From Selaginella moellendorffii (taxonomy: Eukaryota; Plantae; Lycopodiophyta), in contig NW_003314278.1 in NCBI RefSeq assembly GCF_000143415.4, positions 388,371 to 452,370 of the forward strand: a stretch of DNA of 64,000 nucleotides, read 5' to 3'. Both the position numbers and the translations under genes were made by a program. The notes under the pieces were generated by a model. The model was not told the origin of the DNA and did no database searches. It worked only from the letters and a program-made list of their open reading frames with translations. Each line of letters begins with the position of its first letter. The stretch's first letter is position 1. Positions 8,208 to 62,709 of this stretch are shown here, piece after piece.

Positions 8208-8681
8208 GTTTGTGGTGTGTGAATCTTGTGGGATGGAATCAGTTTCTTTTGAACTGCTCGCCAAGGAATTCCAGAGTATCGGAGAAAATGTAACAAAATT
8301 GCTGCGTTCCTTCGTATGCGACATTTTACATGTTTAGTACTGTTTCTAATCTAGTGTTCATAAAGTTTCCAAAAGTATAATTTGCTGGCTGTGACACCCC
8401 CCTTAGACCACTCGGGCAAACCAGCTTATCGCCTTAGGATAATTACATTAAAGGGTTGGAGCATTCGCCTTAGCATAATTACATTTCGGGATAGCATTCC
8501 GGCTGCAACGCATTCCAAATCCACATCAATTCGCTTACAACGTGTTTGTTGTTGATGATGTGACCTCCCACCAAGTCCGCAAAGTGAACAGTATAGAAGT
8601 CTATAACTTTAAAGCCCACCTCTACTATCCATAGCTGCGCACTCTTTCTTGAGCATTCTTTCCCTTCTTATCTGTTCTAGG

Positions 8682-9950
8682 ATGGCAGCCACCGTCACAA
8701 TTGTTGGCAATGCTTATGTGTACCCAAGAGAGGGGTCCAATAGTTTCGGTTCTATTTCTGAAGCCGGGCTTGGAGCATGGACAGATGTCACTGGATCTAC
8801 CCGTGTCTACTTCTGGCCACAGAAAACTGGGTCGATTTCTGTTTCAATCAAGGCAAGATCTGTTGACAATACTAACACTTTGCGTTTAAGTCTCGATGGT
8901 AGTGCCAGTGCTGCACACGACGTAGTCCTGCCCAAGTCCTCTAATTTCCAAACTTATACAGTAGGAACATACACCATTTCGAGCTCAAGGTATCACTATC
9001 TGGAGATACGTGCAGTCACCAAAAACTCAATCTACCTTCCTGATGTGCAAGCACTGGTCATCTCTGGTTCTGCTGCCGAAGGCCTCAAGTATAACAAGAG
9101 CTCCTTCCGCGGTGCACCCTCAACGCATCTTTCGTACAAAACAGAGGGTATCGAGGGGGGTATCACTTGGTTCTACACTGAAATCTATGTCAAGCAAGGC
9201 GAAGATCCCCTTTACTCCTACTACATGACGAATGGTTTTGGAGATGGCTACTTTGGTATTCAGGTAAGTTCCAGTGTAATTGCATTATCCACTTCCTAAT
9301 ATTCTTATCATCTATAGGTGAACTCACCGACTGAAAGGAGAGTATTATTTTCAATATGGAGCAACTATGATACTCAGAAACCAGAGGAGATCCCCGAAGA
9401 CTACAAAGTGAAGCTGGTGAAAAAAGGAAGTGATGTGATTTCAGGAGAATTTGGTAACGAAGGGTCGGGTGCACAGAGCTACTTCAAATACATGTGGAAA
9501 ACTGACACCGTTTACAGATGCCTTGTCAAGGCTGAAGCTTCTGGTAGCGACAACACCATATTTTCAGGTTACTTCCATATGCCGGAGTCGGGCTGGAAGC
9601 TGATAGCTCGATGGAACAAACCAAAGACTGGAGCTCTCTTGTTGACAGGGCTTTATTCCTTTGTGGAGAACTTTTCAAGCAATGGAAACGACTACTTCAA
9701 GGCTCACTTTGGCAACCAGTGGGCTTATGGTAAGGATGGATGGGTGCAGCTGACCAAGGCCGGATTCACCACGACCGCCAGTGAAGAGAAGCATCAGCGA
9801 TATGATTATGGCGCTGGGGCAGAAGGCGTTTGGATGTATATGTATAGTGGTGGATTTAAGCAGACGAACAATGTGAAGGCTGGAGATATCATACAAAGGA
9901 GCGGTGGTCCTAGTCCTGATGTGGACTTGAAAAAATTGGATGCTCTCTAA
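8682..9950 (+). CDS. DUF5077 + DUF3472 domain protein (Bacteroidetes-type family); exons 8682-9263 and 9318-9950
   Basis: Family-typical motifs RGAPSTHLSY, WFYTEI, SYYMTNGFGDGYFGIQ|VNSPTERRVLFSIWS, GEFGNEGSGAQSY, LYSFVENF and FGNQW. A 54-nt phase-0 GT-AG intron joins the two ORFs. Confidence 0.88.
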
Positions 9951-10820: not shown

Positions 10821-11291
10821 TTAGAGAGCATCCAATATTGGGAAGTCCACGTCAGGATCAGGACCAACGCTCCTTTCTATGACATCTCCAACCTTCACAT
10901 TGTTGGTCTGCCTCAGATGGACATCTCTTGAAGAACCAGAGATGATCAGCGCTTGCACCTCAGGAAGGTAGGTTGAGTTTTGGGTGACTGCACGTATTTC
11001 CAGATAGTGATACTCTGGTATAAGTTCCCACTGTATAAGTTTTGACTTGGGCAAAACTACGTCGTGTGCAGCATTGGGACTACCATCGAGGCTTAAGCGC
11101 AAGGTGTTAGTGTTGTCAACTGATCTTGCCTGGATTGAAACAGAGATCCATCCAGTTTTCTGTGGAAAAAAGAAGACACGGGTTGATCCAGTGGCATCGG
11201 TCCATCCTTCAAGGCCATCATTAGAAATAGAACCGAAACTGTCGTTTGGGTACACGTAACCATTGCCAACAAGAGTGACGGTGGCTGCCAT
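10821..11291 (-). CDS. Inverted paralog of the DUF5077/DUF3472 gene retaining only DUF5077 and the C-terminal tail (156 aa; possibly a pseudogene)
   Basis: MAATVTLVGNGYVYP...ALIISGSS is joined in frame to QTNNVKVGDVIERS...LDAL*. The whole DUF3472 region and the intron are absent. Confidence 0.7.
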   Translation of the reverse strand: MAATVTLVGNGYVYPNDSFGSISNDGLEGWTDATGSTRVFFFPQKTGWISVSIQARSVDNTNTLRLSLDGSPNAAHDVVLPKSKLIQWELIPEYHYLEIRAVTQNSTYLPEVQALIISGSSRDVHLRQTNNVKVGDVIERSVGPDPDVDFPILDAL

Positions 11292-11654
11292 TAGAAGTGG
11301 ATAGATAAAGAAGGGGAAGAGGGCTCAACTAGAAGTGGGCAATGGACTTTGAGGAACAATCCGAGACACACACACACAAAAGATTGCACAGCAATTTATA
11401 GACTTCAGAAGCACCTAAAAAGAACTAAGAAGGTGCGATTAGGCTATGGTTCAACATCGCTTGAGAAATATTGCATTTATAAGTGTGGGGTTGAGGGCTC
11501 CTTTCAGTATGGACACGTTATTTTGGCTTGAGAAGCAGATCATGGAGATGGAGATGGAGAAGCGGGATATCATGGAGATGGAGCCCTGCACCAAACTTTT
11601 TTCCTTGGTAAATTATGTTTGCCTTTTTAGTAAACCAAACATTTCTTTTTTCTG

Positions 11655-11778
11655 AGATGGATCCGAAATGGAGTCCGAGATGGACCCGAAATGGAGTCCG
11701 AGATGGAGTCCGAGATGGATCCGAGATGGAGTCTGAGATGGACCCGAGATGGACCCGAAATGGAGTCTGAGATGGAGT
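11655..11778. repeat. Tandem 11-12 nt minisatellite (GAGATGGAGTCC / GAAATGGAGTCC / GAGATGGACCC)
   Basis: About 11 adjacent imperfect units are visible. Confidence 0.9.
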
Positions 11779-11789
11779 GGCATAACGGC

Positions 11790-12090
11790 CTGGTATGGGT
11801 ATCTCTACCCCCCCCCCCCCCCTCCCCACTTCTATCCCGAAGGGAAGGCCCAAGCCCCTACGAAGGGCAAAGACTAATGAGCCATGAGGTACTCAACTGG
11901 GGCACCACTCCACATGACCCGGGAGCACTACAGTCGGTTTCCCTTTCAGGAGTGGGAGCTGCTTTTGAGCACTTCCTTGGGTGGCCCCTCTGGCACCACC
12001 CAAGTCCATACTCACTCCCACCCAAGGCCCCTCGGCCCCAATGTCAACCTCAAGTCAGTTTGGAAGCACCACTAGAGAGTTCCTTCAAGA
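11790..12090 (-). mobile_element. LTR-derived fragment
   Basis: Reverse-complement similarity to ~41950-42220, which lies downstream of the gypsy chromodomain. Confidence 0.6.
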
Positions 12091-12387
12091 CTGTATAAAA
12101 AGAGAAAATAATATGTTATACATTGTTTGGTTTTGTGTTATTCAATCCAATTGATCAAATGGAAATTTATAATTATAAAAATTTGTATACAAAATTAATC
12201 TTAATGCATAGTAGAATAAGCTAGAATATATTAAGAAGTTTAAGAAAATCTATAAATTATAAATATGTTTAGAAATTTCTAAAATATTTAAACATACTCT
12301 AAATAGGTTTGCTTACGCAAACCAAAATTGAATTATTTTTACTATGAACATTAAAGAGTTTATTGCATGGGTTTAGGGCTTTGTGCA

Positions 12388-15300
12388 ATGGAGGAGGCGG
12401 GCAAAGGCGCACGAAGAGGCGGAGGAGGCGAGATGCTTGTAAGTGGCCAGGAGCGCAATGCAAGAGATTGCGCTATCGCTGGATGTGATCTTTGATGTGA
12501 TTGGAAATTCCAGGGCCTCGTGCTTTCACGCCGCTTAAATGTGGAGCATTTAACGATTTCGAGCGCTCTGCTCGCGGATGTAAGTTCTTGATTTCGTGAT
12601 CTATACACTCCATACGATTTCTTCTTCGTGTTTGTAGTTCTTCCTTCCTGCGGATTCTCGTTCGGGTGGTGCAAAATGCAGGTGCAATCTTCGACTGGGA
12701 AATCGATCGAAGCATCCACTTCTGCCGCCGATGAATCGTCGAGGTTTGAGACGCTTTCATCATGCGTGCTCAAGTGGTCGCTGGACAACGTCGAGAATGG
12801 CTCGCTCATTCAGGTGAGTTGTTTTTTTTTTTTCTCTTCTTTCTTTGAGCTTGCACTTTGCTTGACAAGGAAGATGGTGTTCCAGGTGGGAAAAATTCCT
12901 CTCGAGTTTACCTCTTTGAGGCAGTATCTCGCGAGCTTCAGGTTGCCGCTACTCGAGGAAGTGCGAGAAGGATTAAGCCGCGGCCTCTCACGGATTAAAA
13001 AAGATGGCTGGGCTATGGTACGAGTGGAGATGGAAGACACAGACGAAGCGCTTCGACGGGTCTGGCTCAAGGTGGACGGTAAAGACAACTCCTCTTTCAA
13101 GCCAATGGATGTTGTCCTACTCGCGACAAGCCCAACTTCCTCCGCGAAGGACGTGCAAGCTTCGGGAAAGATGCACGCGCTGGTTCTACTGACCGGCTTT
13201 GATGTTCCAACGGGCTTTTGGGAGGCCGAGATGTACTCCACATCCCAGATGGAGAACGCTCTGACTGATCCGGAGAGAAGCTGGTACGTCATTGGCTTGG
13301 AGTCGCTGGTATCAGCTTCGAGGATTTGGAATGCGTTGCAGCGGCCGCTGTTTGCCGATGAAAATCGGTTCCCGATTTTCGACGAGGTGCTGCAACAGGT
13401 ACCTAGAGAATTTTTCTGTCACTGAAGTTACGTATTTTTCGCTAACTTCATGTTTTCGTTTATAGGCACTTTGGGTGGATGATGCTGACAAAGGATTTCT
13501 TTCTGGAACAAGATGCTCGCATCTGAACGATTCTCAATCAAGGGCCGTGTCCAGCACCGTCTTGGCGCTTGAGAAAAATCAAAAGCCGTACGTGAGGCTG
13601 ATACAGGGACCTCCGGGTACAGGGAAAACGTCGGTGCTAGCCGCACTTCTTTCTGCGCTACGGAGCTCTGGAAGGCGTGTATTGGTTTGCGCTCCTACAA
13701 ACATGGCCGTTCAGGAACTAGTCACTCGGTTTCTGAAGACAAACGACTCCGGCTCCAATAATATTCTGCTCATGGGAAATGAGACAAGGCTGACTGGTGT
13801 TAGAGACAAGCCGCTGTCGGAAGTGTTTCTTCCATATCGCTTGAACAGGATATCGTCGACCTTAAGCCGCTGGAAATCAGAAGCGTCTTCCATGGTCGAC
13901 TTTCTGAATATGGAGGCCTCTCAAAACTTCTCGGACGTCGTACGAAGAAAGTTCGCCAGTCTTGAACAGCAGATGGTGCAGGCTCTTTCGGACCTGCCGA
14001 CCACACTCGTTCAGTCGGCTGAAATCGTCGAAGTGAAAAGCCTCCTCACCAAGATAAGCGATCTTATTGATGCTATTGCTTGCTTTGGTGTCAACAGGAG
14101 CATCAAGAACAACCTTGACAAACTAGCTGTCCTCCTTCAGAGCCTTCAAGTGAGTGCTGACCGCATGACGAGCTTCATCAGAAGGCAGCTCGTCAGGCAT
14201 TCGACCATGGTGTTTTGCACGCTGTCTTGCGCTGCTATGCCGTTGGTGCAAAATTCGGCGGTGCCTTTTGACGTAGCTGTTCTTGACGAGGCTTCTCAAG
14301 CTATCGAAGCGGAAACAGCTATCATTATGGGCCTTTCTTGTCTAAAGCAACTCGTCCTTGTTGGAGACCACCGGCAGTTACCACCCACTGTTCTTAGCGA
14401 GGTACTTTTAACCGTGCAAACTTCGTACTGATTCGATGCCTGTATGTGTTTACAGAAGTCTAAAATGTCCGGTTATGGAAGGAGCTTGTTCCAGAGGCTC
14501 CATGCGCTGGACCACCCGAATATTATGCTTAATGTTCAGTACCGCATGCACCCATCTATTTGCCAGTTCTCAAACTATGAATTCTACAAGCGAAAAATCC
14601 AAGATGGCCCGAATGTAACAGTGAGTTCTTACGGCGCAGCGTTCCGCTCGCTCTTATACGGCCCATATATATTTATCCATGCGAACAGTTCGGAATGCAC
14701 TGCCAAAGAGGGGAGCTTGGAAAATCCCACGGAAATTGAAGTCATCATGTTTCTATTGGAGAAACTCCAAAAAGGTACACAAAGAAGCTGGCTGAAAATT
14801 CTAAGATGTGATTTTCCAGAGAAACTAAACTGCAGCAACCTTGAGGTGGGAGTTATCTCCTTTTACAAGGCACAAGTTACTGCACTAAGCAGTCGCATAC
14901 GACATGCTTCGTTTTCTTTCAAGGTCGAGGCCAATACTGTCGACGGATTTCAAGGTCGTGAAATGGACGTAGTTATTTTGTCGACTGTCAGATCGAACCC
15001 TTCCGGAGATTTGGGCTTTCTGAAAGATCATCGACGTCTGAATGTTTCAATAACTCGAGCCAGGTGGTTGCCATAATGTTTGAGCCTCTACTTACTTTTT
15101 CCCATGCAGATACTGTCTTTGCATTGTTGGTAACGAGCATACCTTGGCTAAGAACGAGACCATTTGGAGGGATTTAGTTCAGAATGCAAAAAGCAGAGAT
15201 TGCTTTGTGGACTCGGCCGACGTTCCAGAGCTGGAGAAGCGTGTTGGAGGCAAAGTGGACCAGTTTTATGATATCCTGATTAACAGTTCTCTTCTCGAAA

Positions 15301-18300
15301 ACTGTATCTGGAAGGTGAGTGTCCTCATCGGTTTTCTTGCCTACCTGAGCATGTTTTTCTCTTTGCAGGTCTTCTTCAGCAAGGAGTTCAAGACCAGTTA
15401 CGCTCGTCAATCGGCGTCCTTCAGAAATGGCTGCACGAGATTTGTCCTGGGACTTGCTAGAGGTCACTGGCCTGAGTTGAACTCTGCGATGCCGCTGACA
15501 CTCTCAGAGGATATTCACGTGTTTCGCATGAACGGTTTGCTTCTAGTCTGGAGAGTGGTTTTGACGAGCAATAGAAGGTCTCAGGTCATCGAGCTATGTG
15601 ATGTGGTGGGCGTTCAAGGACTACAGCGAATTGTCCAACGATTGAATACTGTCAGCTCGACTTACTCATTGGATTACGTGGAACGCTGTCGAACTATGAC
15701 GACAAAGACGTCCGTTTGCGGTAGAATCGCTGTTCCGGAAGTATGGAGTGGAGATGTTGTCCAGAAAGTCATCGACGACGGCAATGCAGCGCCTCCAATT
15801 AGTCAGCCTGGTCCCAAAGTTTCAGAGAATCTATCTCAACTGAAGTTCTATTCAGAGTCATCTGGAATTGCGAACTACGTTCTGACAGACAGTGGCGGTA
15901 CAGAAGTCGAGCTGCCGTTCCCTCTAAGTCGTCCACAGACCGAGCTGATATTGTCTTCTTCGTCGGCTTTTGTTATCGGAAGGTCGGGCACAGGCAAAAC
16001 CACGGTTATCAGTGTTAAGATGATGCGCATGGAGCAGCTCCATCGCATATCAAGGTGTGGTTTTGGTGATAACGGGAGTTTTGATAGCGCCGAGGGGACG
16101 TGCTTGCGTCAAGCGTTCATTACCGTTAGCCAGAGGCTGTGTTTCGCGGTCAAGAACTACCTCGAAAAGTTTAAAAGGTATGCGACGAACTCCTGTTACT
16201 CATCAGCGTCACCAGTTTTTCTTACACTTCAGGTCTTTACTACGAAGTGATGCTTATACTGCTGTTCTTGGGGTCACCTGCAACGAAGATGTCATGCTTG
16301 ACGAAGAGTTTCAAGGCGGCATTCCAGACAGTTTCATCAACATCCAACCTGAGGCCTTTCCTCTCGTCTTGACCCTCAGAAAGCTTTTGGATATGGTTAA
16401 TGGAACTGTGTCGAGGCCTTTCCGAAGCAGAACACTTGAAGACCGGGAAGTGGACTTCGACGTCTTTGTGTTGGTTTACTGGCCGCGTATGAAGGCCTCT
16501 TTGAGGAAGACGTACGATGCATCAGATGTCTACGCGGCTATCGTGTCTCACATCAAGGGAAGCGCTGAGTCCCTTCACTGTCCGGACGGAAGGCTTTCTC
16601 GCGAGGCTTTCGTCAACTTGGCATCACAGCGTATTTCGGTGTTCGATGAGGGGCAACGGGACACGATCTACGACCTCTATCTCCACTACGAGAAACTCAA
16701 GAAAGAAAACGACGACTATGACATGGCAGACTATGTTTGGCATTTGTACCGGCAGCTCAGGGTGGACGGGTTCAAGGGAGACAAGCTTGATCTTGTCTAT
16801 ATTGACGAGGTGCAAGATTTTACGCTGGCTCAGGTATGCCTGCTCAAGTTCGTATGCACGAATTATCGGGAAGGCTTCATTTTTGCTGGAGATACGGCTC
16901 AGACCATCACTAGAGGTGTGGAATTCCGGTTTGAAGATGTACGTCGGGTTTTCTATACAGAGTTTCTGGAAGCCGAGGCGAGGTGTCCGGATATCGTGCA
17001 GCTGATAGACAATTTCAGGACAACGGGCGCCATTGTCCAGGTTGCAAATAGTGTTATGGAGCTGATACTTCGGTTCTTCCCTCTCAGGGTCGACAGGCTC
17101 GAGCCGGAAAGTAGTTCTGTGCTCGGCGAAGTTCCAGTTGTTTTGAATCTCCCGGACGATAGCACATCTATCAACTTTTTGTTTCAGAGTCATGGATCCA
17201 GCTCCGGTTACGAGTTTGGCTCGGATCAAGCCGTACTAGTCCGGAACAAGTCCCAGAAGCAGCAGCTGCTAAAGGAACTCGGCACAAGATGCCTCGTCCT
17301 TACGGTGGAGGACAGTAAAGGATTAGAGTTTGAGGTAGGCTTTATTTTCTTCTAACATGCTCTAAGCTACTCTTACACAGGATGTATTGATCTTTAACTT
17401 CTTCACTGACTCGGCAAGCCCTGAAGCGTGGAAAGCACTTTCTTCTGTTTTTGGTAGAAGCCGTCCAGCTAATTGTTTACCTCAGCTTCCCAGGATTTTG
17501 TGCAATGAACTCAAGGAGCTATATGTTGCCATCACGAGAACTAAACGGAGGCTGTGGATCATCGACGAGAACCTGGAATATCAGCGGCCAATGCTTGATT
17601 ACTGGAAGAATCTGAACGTTGTCAAGAGAGGTGCGTTGGATGCGTCACTGATATCCTCGATTCACCAGATAAGCTCCCCCGAGCAGTGGCACCAACGTGG
17701 TGTTGAGGTAAATATCTGTGTAGTGGATTCACTCTTTAAACAACATGTATTGGCTGGTCTGTGTAGATGTTTAATGCTCGCCGGTTTGACATGGCAAAGC
17801 TTTCCTTCAAACGAGCAGGCGATAGATACCGAGCAAAACTATCTGAAGCTGCGGAATTTCAAGAGAGGGGAGAAAAATTCCTTAGAGTCGACGAGAGTGC
17901 TGCAAAAAGGGACCTACAACGTGCGGCCGCACTGTACGAGTCCCTGGAAAAGAAGGACGCTGTAGCAAAGTGTTTCAGATTGATGAAAGACTTCCAAAGG
18001 GCAGGTACTGTGATGAATAAATCTTCTCTCTCTCTCTCGTACTTATACTGATTTGTTGTGTAGGTTTTTTGTACAAGCAATGCTCAAAGCTAGAACTCTC
18101 GGGAGACTGCTACATGGCCGCAAATCTCCACAGCGAAGCTTCACAAGTATATGCGGAGGGGAACCATTACGAGAAATGCCTTGAAGCTTGTACCAAGGGA
18201 AGACTGTACAAAGAAGGCCTCGACTTCATTCGCAAATGGACAGTACCAAGCGTGCCTGCCAACACGTTGGAGAAGTTTCGGAAGAACGCTGCCGAGTACT

Positions 18301-20818
18301 TTCATCGCAAACTAGACGCTCACTCGATGATGGAGGCGGTGCAAGCCTCTTCGGATGCGGACTGGAAGATTGCGTTCTTGGAAAGAAGGGAGTACCTTGA
18401 CGAGCTTATCGAGCTTGCATGCAGCCTTGGCAACTTCGAGAAAGCTGCAGAAGTGGCTGCGAGGAAGGGAAACGTGCTCCGAGCATCGGAGCTACTCGAA
18501 AATGCCGGCAAGCGTTCCGAAGCGGCTCGGAAAATCCTCGAGCACATCAGGCTCCAGTCCTTGTGGGGAGGACAAAACTGTGGCTGGCCTCTGAAGAGTT
18601 TCCAAGACCGTGAGACTCTCGACAAGGCGGCACGTCTAGCTGCTGACAACCCCGTGTTCTCGCACGAGCTCAAAGTGCTCCGGACGACCACAGGCACTGC
18701 CACAGTGAGAGAGCTCCTGGAAAACTGGAAGGTGGCGAAGAACTCCAACGTCGAAGTCATTGCCTTGCGGCAGCTATTGGGAGGGGCGTCCGAGGCCTTG
18801 AAAGCAGCAGCCTACTCGTTTGAGCTCGATTCCGAGCGCTCTGGCTTGACGCTCGTCCAGGACAACGTCGAGAACTTGCTACAACTCGTGCTCTCGGCTT
18901 GGAACACCTGGTTTCAATGGATCCACTCCGTGGTGCAGTCTCTCGATGGAGTTCAGGATATGTTACCACGGGGAACTGCGGTTTCAGCGGCTTTGAACTA
19001 CCTGGGAATCAGCCGAGACATGAATCCCAAGCTCTGCATTGTGGAGTATGTTGGAGCTTTCTGGCTCCAAAACGAAACAGTCAGGCCGCTTTACAGTGGA
19101 GGCAGCAGGGGCCAACACAGGACCGAGCGAGTAGCATCACTCGCGAAGAAGTTTTTGGAAGAGCAGCTACTAGAGTCGGGGCTGGACTGCATCCGGAGTT
19201 TGCACAAGTGCAGCGAGATTTCTTCAACACAATCGAGAGTAACGCTCGTTATCCTCGGCTTGCTCGAGAGTCTTGCCACTGTCCTGGATAGCCATCAGGA
19301 GAAGCTCCAACTAAAGCTCCAGGGATACAGAAGGCTTCTCTACAATGTAGCGTTTCTCGGGGACGCGCAGAGTTTTCTCGACGTATCATCCATTTGCCAC
19401 GAGCGTTTCTTCACTGCGCACTTGGACCGCGTTGCAGGCGAGCAGAGCTTGGATTTTCTCGACAACTCCAGCGAGGTGCGGGGAACTCTGCGCGTTCTCT
19501 TACCGTTTCTGAGCGCTCCAAAGCTCGAGACGTTGAAGCGACACCTTCCAGAAGACATGGCTGGCTTGGCAACGTCCTACTCGCGCAGCAACCATCGGTG
19601 TACTCCTTTCGAGTTCCTGGATTCCGTAGTGAGGCCGTCAGTTGGATTTATCGGCGATATCATCACTAAGGACGTCATTCCAACAGACTTCATCAGGCCG
19701 CAATTCTATCTGCTGGAGAGAGCCACGGTGCTGAGCTTGGCTTGCTTCACGGGCCTGGAGCAGATGGTCCTTCCGGAGAGCCTGGCTTTCAAGTTTATGA
19801 CTGGAAGGCCGCAGGAACAGGTGCTCTCCAAAGTTCTCGAGCTGATCAAGCCCCCTGGAGAGGCCTCTGCTTGCGCCTGCCTCAATGCCATCGGCAGGAT
19901 TTGCATCTCGTTGCTTCTAGGAAGGCCAGACTTTTTCGTGGAGTGGCTGCGCAGGAGCAGCAAGCTCGTTCTTGAGCTGGTGAAAGTGCTCCTCACACTC
20001 ATGCTGGCGGGTATCAGAGGTAAACTTTTGGAGTGCTTACGTTCTCCCGTTCTGGACGTGCTGCCTTGGGAGATCAAGCAGAAGTTACAGGAAACGGTTT
20101 CTACGTCCAAAGTTCTGGAAAAAGACCTGTTGGAGCTCATGGCGATAACAGGTGATCCTTTCCTCGTCTTGATGCGTCGAAGCGGTGGTCACGATAATGT
20201 ACTGCGACGTGTTGGCATCGAGCCTTCTCCCGGAGTTTTCAGCTCGAAAGGTTTGCAAGCCACGAGCTGTGAGCGGACCGGGAACTGGTCGAAAAAAGAC
20301 GAGGCACTGGTTGAGTTGCGAGCAAGTATGAAAGGAAAGAAGAAGGAAAACGAGTACCTCCGCGAAGCGAACTCAGTGTTTAGCTCACTCGGTTTGAAAG
20401 ACGACAGCTTTTACGTTCGAGACTTCCTCACCACGGCGTGCCCGCTCAAGGCATGAGTTTTATATCCTTTTTCTTTTCGATTCTTTTGAGAACTCTTTCT
20501 TTCCTGCAGGCCTCCGCGGACGATTTTCTACTCGACTTGAGCTCCGCGATAGAAATAATGAAAACGGGACTCGGTATCAGGCCAAAGCAAGAAAAAGCCC
20601 GGTGTTTGCTTCAAAACATGATCCTGTACCACGGCAAGCTCGAGTGCATGACAACGCTTCTAAATCCCAGGGACGCCAGACACGAGCTCCTCGACTTGGC
20701 TGCTCTGCAAAAATCAGTCCAAGCACTGCGAGAGAAGCTCGAGAAAGGGAAGAAACTTCTGGGCGACCACGTCAAAAGGCTGCTAAGCAATCGCTGGGAC
20801 TTGCGAGAGTGGCAATAA
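12388..20818 (+). CDS. TRANK1/LBA1-like double SF1 helicase: DUF6469-like N-terminus + SEN1/UPF1-type helicase (AAA_11/AAA_12) + UvrD-like helicase + TPR-like repeats; multi-exon. Start uncertain (12388 or 12676)
   Basis: Helicase 1: GPPGTGKT, DEASQ, VGDHRQLPP, QYRMHPSI, TVDGFQGRE, RLNVSITRAR. Helicase 2: GRSGTGKTT, DEVQD, AGDTAQTITRG, NFRT, SKGLEF, ELYVAITRTKRRL. Ala-rich helical repeats follow. Short introns join successive ORFs. Confidence 0.9.
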
Positions 20819-60981: not shown

Positions 60982-61790
60982 TTGAGAGCGTTTGATGTCC
61001 AGCAGCGCGGAGAGGACGAGGATCGACCGCTTCCGCGCCCGCTGCCGAGGTCTCGTCTCCTCTGGGTGTCGCTGCTCGTTCTCCTGGCCGCGATCTCGGC
61101 TGGAGGAATCGCGCCTCTCTTCCGTGCACCCGGCATTGGATTCCACACCGCTGGATCGGCCCGGGATGGAGCAGCAATGGCGCTGGGGTTTCACTTCCAG
61201 GCGCCCCCAAACAGCAGCATCTGGATGATCAGTCCAAACGCCCCGGTGTTCTACCTACCGCGGATTCTACCATCTCTTCTACCGATTCACCACTCCATCG
61301 TCATCCACGAGCAAGAACCAGAGCTCCTGGGGCCACGCCATCGCCAAGGACCTCCTCCACTGGACGCATCTCCCCACGGCGCTGGATCCCGGGCCAGAGA
61401 GGTACGACGAGCAAGGAATTCTTGGCGGATCCATGACGCTTCTCGTCCAGGGCCCCGTGATCCTCTACACTGGAATCTCCAGCGATGGCGCCACCACACA
61501 GAATGCCGCTGTCCCGGTCGATCCAGGCGACTCCATGCTCAAGCACTGGAAGAAGATCGCCCAAAACCCTCTCATTCCAGCAGGAGGAAGGGTGGCGATG
61601 AGAGATCCAAGCAGCGCGTGGAGGGATTCTTCTTGGCGGATCCTTCTTGGCGGCGAGAATGCCAGCGATGGCGTTGGATTCGTCTACTGGAGCAACGATT
61701 TCCTGGACGGGGAGTGGAAGAGGCTGGAGACACCACTGCTGCGAATGCCAGGAGCTGGGATTTTGGAATCTCCAGATTTCTTCCAGGTTC
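60982..61790 (+). pseudogene. GH32 vacuolar-invertase-like gene fragment, frameshifted and truncated
   Basis: Hydrophobic N-terminal anchor, GFHFQ, WMISPNAPVFY, FYHLFY, WGHAIAKDLLHW, ILYTG, RDPSSAW, LESPDFF. A 4-nt CTAC duplication at ~61255 shifts the frame. Confidence 0.88.
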
Positions 61791-62709
61791 CATCGGCAGG
61801 ATTTGCATCTCGTTGCTTTTAGCAAGGCCAGACTTTTTCGTGGAGTGGCAGCGAGCTCGTTCTTGAGCTGGTGAAAGTCCTCCTCACACTCATGGTGGCG
61901 GGTATCAGAGGTAAGCTTTTGGAGTGCTTACGTTCTCCCGTTCTGGACGTGCTGCCTTAGGAGATCAAGCAGAAGTTACAGGAAACGGTTTCTACGTCCA
62001 AAGTTCTGGAAAAAGACCTGTTGGAGCTCATGGCGATCACAGGTGATCCTTTCCTCGTCTTGACACGTCGAAGCGGTGGTCACGATAATGTACTGCGAAG
62101 TGTTGGCATCGAGCCTTCTCCCGGAGTTTTCAGCTCGAAAGGTTTGCAAGCCACGAGCTGTGAGCGGACCGGGAACTGGTCGAAAAAAGACGAGGCACTG
62201 GTTGAGTTGCGAGCAAGTATGAAAGGAAAGAAGAAGGAAAACGAGTACCGAAGCGAAGCGAAGTCAGTGTTTAGCTCACTCGGCTTGAAAGACGACAACT
62301 TTTACGTTCGAGCCTTCCTCACCACGGCGTGCCCGCTCAAGGCATGAGTTTTATATCCTTTTTCTTTTCGATTCTTTTGAGAACTCTTTCTTTCCTGCAG
62401 GCCTCCGCGGACGATTTTCTACTCGACTTGAGCTCCGCGATAGAAATAATGAAAACGGGACTCAGCATCAGGCCAAAGCAAGAAAAAGCCCGGTGTTTGC
62501 TTCAAAACATGATCCTGTTCCAAGGCAAGCTCGAGTGCATGACAACGCTTCTAAATCCCAGGGACGCCAGACACGAGCTCCTCGACTTGGCTGCTCTGCA
62601 AAAATCAGTCCAAGCACTGCGAGAGAAGCTTGAGAAAGGGAAGGAACTTCTGCGCGACCACGTCAAAAGGCTGCTAACCAATCGCTGGGACTTGCGAGAG
62701 TGGCAATAA
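61790..62709 (+). pseudogene. Duplicate of the helicase 3' exons
   Basis: Near-identical to 19888-20818, with a small deletion at ~61850 and TGG->TAG at ~61958. Confidence 0.9.

Follow-up and report, generated by a model that had tools for sequence, protein, structure and literature searches.

A predicted RelE/ParE-type fold between the two helicase motors of a giant protein from Selaginella moellendorffii

We studied a 64,000-nucleotide stretch of contig NW_003314278.1 from the lycophyte Selaginella moellendorffii, further referred to as the window, and in it a nuclear gene whose giant product contains two helicase motors. This product is XP_002971430.2 (LOC9642950, 'uncharacterized protein', 2496 aa), below called P0065. 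According to the structural models, positions 15309–15743 of the window encode a real, independently folding domain of approximately 85–125 residues. It is located between the motors and is confidently predicted to have the RelE/ParE (BECR) fold, as supported by two structural searches. RelE/ParE toxins are regarded as prokaryotic. The plant domain is probably a strongly diverged, catalytically dead module. All searches and folds were run with single-exon references or with the public protein P0065, and the window exons were never joined.

Position and predicted fold of the inter-motor domain

The peptide quoted in a preliminary description of this DNA, made from the sequence alone, is indeed encoded between the two helicases on the + strand, at 15309–15314 plus 15369–15660. 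The codons for ..CIWK end at 15314, and VFFSKEFKTSYARQ...SQVIELCDVV begins at 15369; the whole exon 15369–16177 is 100% identical to residues 786–1054 of P0065. By the family alignment, W784-K785 probably forms the beginning of strand beta1 of the RelE-like domain. The parts of the domain and its surroundings are as follows.

15309..15314, + strand: W784 and K785, the last two codons of exon 6; the family start W-[KRQ]-V-x-F-S is common to relatives
15315..15368, + strand: in-frame GT..AG intron of 54 nt that splits the putative beta1; read from the sequence and skipped by P0065
15369..15608, + strand: predicted RelE/ParE-fold core, model residues 1–80; AlphaFold2 model (pLDDT 93–97, falling to about 71 in the 31–50 loop), with Foldseek and VIA-align matches over model residues 1 to about 90
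15612..15656, + strand: predicted helix alpha3, model residues 82–96, with conserved R91; it occupies the place of the RelE/ParE C-terminal helix
15669..15743, + strand: predicted family-specific extension (helix alpha4 and a beta-hairpin), model residues 101–125, with conserved Y103 and C107; predicted local distance difference test (pLDDT) 81–92
15744..15977, + strand: linker into motor 2, mostly of low confidence (pLDDT 46–76); its 3' part is the conserved KFYS..LPF.. lead-in

One more conserved residue, Y99, is situated in the alpha3–alpha4 loop just ahead of the extension.

The sequence that was folded corresponds to window positions 15369–15950 (194 residues), without the WK that opens beta1 in the preceding exon. 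The model built by AlphaFold2 from this single sequence was unusable (pLDDT 40). With a 56-row alignment of homologues, the mean pLDDT over the full query was 76–79 in all five models; in the confident model 99 residues scored above 90, and the predicted template modelling score was 0.65. The block means were 92–97 over residues 1–30 and 51–110, and about 71 in the loop formed by residues 31–50. The predicted elements are beta1 (residues 2–3), alpha1 (5–12), alpha2 (16–30), beta2 (49–54), beta3 (57–65), beta4 (71–80) and alpha3 (82–96), in this order, with the family-specific alpha4 and beta-hairpin (101–122) after them, and the published topology of RelE equals that predicted for the plant domain (PMC11980606).

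The model was compared with 350,542 PDB chains using Foldseek. Approximately the first 50 rows contained almost only RelE, ParE, HigB/HigB2, YafQ, PrpT and related toxins. The best match, 4fxe_E, had an E-value of 4.8e-3, probability 1.00 and a target-normalised TM-score of 0.70, while the TM-score of 4fxe_F was 0.73. VIA-align, a procedure independent of Foldseek, was applied to 48,161 representative chains. Its ranks 1–25 were almost all toxins or domains of the RelE/ParE toxin–antitoxin type, the exception being the insecticidal toxin Txp40 at rank 19. The Z-scores decreased from 8.9 (3bpq_D, 83 of 86 residues aligned, 2.8 Å) to 5.0, with 4.6 in the following row; the values for YafQ, Pyrococcus horikoshii RelE, E. 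coli RelE, YoeB, ParE and Cami1 (CARF-RelE) were 7.9, 7.8, 7.6, 7.3, 7.0 and 6.8, respectively. The closest structures are thus type II toxins, namely, E. coli RelE (4FXE, 2KC8), Methanocaldococcus jannaschii RelE (3BPQ), YoeB (2A6Q), YafQ (4Q2U), HigB (7NBU) and ParE (6X0A, 5CZF). A weak lead in the same direction came from a protein-language-model search (score 0.85): of its 30 neighbours, those with a named family all belonged to ParE_like or ParE_toxin.

We also considered whether the segment is an ordinary helicase accessory subdomain. This candidate was rejected, as no helicase chain was found among the Foldseek or VIA-align matches. Since the leading structural matches are almost all of the RelE/ParE toxin type and include no helicase subdomain, the earlier suggestion of a RelE/ParE fold between the motors stands.

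Family conservation and counterparts of the RelE catalytic residues

With the 194-residue query, phmmer was run in full on 1.84 billion representative proteins (E-values up to 1e-3). The scan yielded 62 relatives, nearly all of them over the full query length, with E-values down to 1e-15 beyond S. moellendorffii. Given this conservation along its length, the segment is not a chance open reading frame (ORF). The named relatives come from Selaginella paralogues, Adiantum, Amborella, Triticum, Malania, Euphorbia and the green alga Chlamydomonas eustigma; they mostly have 2400–2900 aa and are labelled 'UvrD-like helicase ATP-binding domain-containing' or 'uncharacterized'. Metagenomic relatives reside on intron-poor eukaryotic contigs, where they adjoin C2, Roc/LRR and THUMP genes. 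Every named source is a plant or a green alga: no prokaryotic relatives were recognised among the representatives scanned, and there were no animal proteins among the 62. The domain family occurs in the giant double helicases of both land plants and green algae and is not covered by any Pfam model.

The family consensus reads W-K-V-x-F-S-x-x-F-x-x-S-F-x-K-L ... G-W-R-P-K ... V-x-G-L-x-L-[IV]-W-S-V-D-I ... Q-V-L-K-V-W-D-I-L-P. Positions G32 and Q72 are invariant (the latter in 100% of members), and four further positions in beta3 and beta4 are kept almost as well: S/T62 in 96%, D64 in 95%, K/R75 in 91% and W77 in 95% of members; D78 is kept in 88%.

The active-site residues of RelE are R61 and R81 (PMC3482391). 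In the in-register hhalign alignment, RelE R61 is matched with position 58 of the family. This position holds L in the window copy, mostly Y or F in the land plants, and R in 18% of members (the algal-type group). The positions of RelE R81–R83 fall into a gap in all members, and no counterpart of RelE Y87 exists anywhere in the family. By this alignment, the window copy has neither of the two RNase active-site arginines. In addition, it departs from five of the best-kept family positions (K36E, S62R, D64V, K75E and W77C). The last four replacements were seen only in the window gene and its sister copy, and the Selaginella paralogue P0002 keeps T62, D64, K75 and W77.

ParE toxins have the same fold without the RNase residues, so RNase activity does not follow from the fold by itself (PMC11980606). 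Judging from the residues, a working RNase in the window copy is unlikely. The reservation in the preliminary description that the domain may be inactive proved justified, as the equivalents of R61 and R81 are absent and family-conserved residues have been lost. For the window copy, a toxin or RNase reading is not supported, and the RNA-surveillance or immune role proposed in that description did not gain support either.

Interpretation of the domain and competing explanations

We favour, with moderate confidence, the explanation that the domain is a diverged and catalytically dead module of the RelE/ParE fold that binds a partner and couples or targets the helicases, and that in the window copy it serves as a spacer or adaptor. 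It would be a RelE/ParE relative that has been domesticated and has diverged very far, either a descendant of the toxins or a look-alike, and that has lost RNA cutting. In the family, the kept positions of beta3 and beta4 (S/T62, D64, Q72, K/R75, W77 and D78), which we read as one patch on the face of the sheet that holds the mRNA in RelE, most likely bind this partner. Candidate partners are a nucleic acid (RNA or DNA), a ribosome-associated surface, or a motor of the protein itself, and through such binding the two helicases would be coupled or targeted. In the window copy most of the patch is replaced, and the domain would probably act as a structural adaptor or spacer whose binding is weaker or has changed; the remodelling of the patch in the window lineage is the reason to think that there it is probably just that.

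Several observations weigh against this explanation. One of them is the lack of a sequence-level link to the bacterial toxins. At E-values up to 10, Pfam contained no RelE/ParE family on residues 784–980 of P0065 or on nine relatives, only chance matches. PADLOC found no RelE/ParE family in the domain sequences either, and phmmer against the PDB sequences found nothing relevant. A word-index search with the exon (274 aa) gave no matches, as its length window does not admit the relatives of about 2500 aa. A profile of ten domain-only sequences gave nothing against the PDB sequences at E-values up to 10; compared with short proteins in order to find stand-alone toxins, it retrieved plant gene fragments only. 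The hhalign comparison of the 55-sequence domain alignment with 106 E. coli-type RelE proteins was not significant (P 0.29), the RelE profile itself being shallow (Neff, the effective number of sequences, 2.2; 120 source proteins at least 68% identical). Ten algal-type members aligned over the full length and in register for every secondary-structure element, placing Y-R-L-I-W on RelE Y60-R61-L-V-Y, with a P of only 0.059. Thus the resemblance to prokaryotic toxins or helicase–toxin fusions that the preliminary description had suggested found no counterpart at the level of sequence homology in the Pfam, profile and hhalign searches. Since no sequence method sees RelE/ParE, it is the fold from which we infer homology rather than convergence, and common ancestry with the toxins is suggested by the structural model.

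Other points on this side concern the residues and the state of the gene. The residue equivalences given above were read off matched ranges and an alignment that was not significant, rather than a superposition. Similarly, positions 62/64 and 75/77 appear to face the same side of neighbouring strands, that is, the mRNA face of RelE, on the basis of strand alternation and not of coordinates. The kept D64, K/R53, K/R75 and S/T62 may constitute an alternative catalytic set in the family. Finally, the domain could still matter in the window copy, because its gene is undamaged and the motifs of the two motors are preserved.

The absence of sequence similarity leaves some room for convergence. In this case a helicase accessory domain specific to the lineage would happen to have adopted a RelE-like small alpha+beta meander, with neither common ancestry with the toxins nor functional analogy to them; we consider this doubtful but the most serious of the alternatives. 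In another reading, the domain is a domesticated RelE-type module that would dock the double helicases of plants and algae onto translating or stalled ribosomes or onto RNA ends. The natural binding site of RelE is the ribosomal A site. The domain would then be the targeting or sensor part of an RNA-surveillance or antiviral machine, and the members with the YR motif and the D64/K75/W77 patch might still cleave RNA. This seems improbable to us. Slightly less credit is due to an active RelE-like endoribonuclease effector, acting in a ribosome-dependent manner or on helicase-fed RNA in a helicase–nuclease of RNA surveillance or antiviral defence. It is contradicted by the absence of counterparts of R81 and Y87 in the family and of R61 in land plants and in the window copy, by the loss of S62, D64, K75 and W77 from the latter, by the example of ParE, where the fold occurs without RNase activity (PMC11980606), and by the lack of a sequence-level relation to catalytic families in Pfam. 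It is very improbable that the fold is an artefact of the alignment and the segment is a flexible inter-motor linker and not a stable domain. The poor single-sequence model and the low confidence of residues 126–194 even with the alignment agree with an artefact, but the pLDDT values of all five alignment-based models and the 99 residues above 90 in the confident one do not. Moreover, the order of helices and strands was already the same in the single-sequence run, and the hydrophobic periodicity and the invariant G32 and Q72 are kept across plants and algae.

The gene, its surroundings and related systems

The exons of P0065 were mapped onto the window, and the regions of the protein outside the inter-motor domain are the following.

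12676..20818, + strand: the whole double-helicase gene, 12 exons; from tblastn and exact-match mapping of P0065, which covers 12676–20815
12676..13398, + strand: N-terminal region, exons 1–2, with a weak DUF6469 match (Pfam PF20073, E 0.0027); DUF6469 also occurs on relatives
13520..15137 (introns included), + strand: motor 1, a superfamily 1 helicase of class SF1B, UPF1/SEN1/DNA2-type, P0065 residues 236–726
15978..17563 (introns included), + strand: motor 2, a UvrD-like helicase of class SF1A, P0065 residues 989–1483, from Walker A to the end of UvrD_C
17564..20815, + strand: C-terminal region of about 1000 residues without a Pfam family

P0065 maps onto the window with no stops and no frameshifts, hence the window copy is intact. 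Both flanking helicases are of the types assigned in the preliminary description. Upstream of the domain, Pfam gave AAA_11 (residues 236–529, E 5.2e-47, 161 bits) and AAA_12 (residues 536–726, E 3.6e-61, 207 bits), with a cut-off of 27, and the motifs GPPGTGKT, DEASQ, GDHRQLPP and QYRMHP are legible in the ORF translations. With these two families, Walker A/B and the other motifs, P0065 is a member of the UPF1/SEN1/DNA2-like SF1B helicases. Downstream, the best matches to UvrD-helicase (E 4e-13, 50 bits, cut-off 23) and UvrD_C (E 1e-11, 45 bits, cut-off 25.6) lie within residues 1191–1483, and the Walker A motif GRSGTGKT starts at residue 989 (15978–16001); DEVQD, GDTAQTI and YVAITR can be read as well. 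These families together with Walker A/B make P0065 a member of the UvrD/Rep-like SF1A helicases as well. Accordingly, both Walker A/B sets (GPPGTGKT/DEASQ and GRSGTGKT/DEVQD) can be read as intact, as had been claimed. The tetratricopeptide repeat (TPR) part of the proposed architecture was not recovered: there is no Pfam match to TPR or ankyrin repeats in P0065 at E-values up to 0.01.

In the metagenomic relative P0028, the gene call directly upstream of the helicase part carries RNase_T (an exonuclease domain) and DUF6469. From this context, some members of the double-helicase family may carry a true nuclease at the N-terminus.

Scaffold GL377571.1 (L013) carries a sister copy or haplotype of the gene, from which the 1856-aa model P0001 derives. 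This copy contains in-frame stops, TAA for CAA at the codon equivalent to residue 1033 and TGA for TGC at that equivalent to residue 1986 (L013 positions 6096 and 9185, corresponding to 16110 and 19188 of the window), plus small indels. The number of synonymous substitutions per synonymous site (dS) between the window and sister copies is 0.033, and the ratio of non-synonymous to synonymous rates (dN/dS) is 0.43 for the whole gene and 0.37 for each of the motors. In the RelE-like domain there are no synonymous and four non-synonymous changes, too few to interpret.

Some features of the neighbouring DNA should be mentioned. At 61789–62706 (+) the window matches residues 2219–2496 of P0065 with 80–93% amino acid identity; the 3' end of the gene is thus repeated there in part, and this piece may represent a truncated duplicate or the last portion of an adjoining paralogue. 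Upstream of the helicase gene there is a bacterial-type DUF5077 gene, and the 156-aa ORF at 10821–11291 (−) is a partial inverted paralogue of its N-terminal part (8649–9299, +). The ORFs at 11446–12098 overlap on both strands and have the low-complexity translations MESEMESEM and ISDSISD, so this segment is probably an intergenic short tandem repeat upstream of the helicase gene. Between 38000 and 54000 the G+C content decreases from about 47% to 19–36%, with the minimum at 50–52 kb and strong skew swings, and this stretch may be AT-rich repeat or transposon-derived sequence.

Compared with RelE/ParE toxins, the plant domain is internal to a 2496-aa eukaryotic protein, is split by an intron, and has an extra helix and hairpin. 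Neither an antitoxin-type Pfam domain in P0065 nor an adjacent antitoxin gene was found, so that a cognate antitoxin is missing there. ParE toxins, which are gyrase poisons, resemble the plant domain in that the fold is shared and the RNase catalytic residues are absent (PMC11980606); the plant domain is likened to them by fold and by its language-model neighbours, not by gyrase or topoisomerase targeting. In architecture, the nearest systems are multidomain RelE fusions of prokaryotic defence. One is Cami1 (CARF-RelE, 8PHB), and another is a helicase that carries a RelE-like domain at its N-terminus and is encoded near Tiamat-like genes (preprint 10.64898/2026.09.30.754977); the RelE domains of both are taken as catalytic. 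Neither helicase fusions nor plant proteins appear in a survey of mono- and multidomain RelE/ParE toxins published in 2025, and its eukaryotic entries are only a handful of doubtful toxin–antitoxin fusions (PMC11980606). In the literature that we searched, nothing ties TRANK1 or plant helicases to RelE/ParE.

The name 'TRANK1-like' used in the preliminary description would apply to P0065 as an architectural analogy, drawn only from the UvrD-like helicase and the long helical C-terminus behind it, with no Pfam TPR or ankyrin match in P0065. Motor 1 is clearly an AAA_11/AAA_12 helicase of the kind present in UPF1, SEN1 and ZNFX1. P0065 differs from both the TRANK1 type and the UPF1/SEN1/ZNFX1 types in that two motors of opposite SF1 classes are combined in one chain.

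For the window gene, the practical value of these results is annotation: the domain is real, and the role of its conserved surface has probably been lost. For the family, the models point to a eukaryotic branch of the RelE/ParE fold that is embedded in helicases and dark to sequence searches, and they offer a first structural approach to a large family of plant proteins that is completely uncharacterised. If so, a toxin fold fixed between two motors in organisms as far apart as green algae and wheat would clearly exemplify recruitment into a conserved eukaryotic protein.

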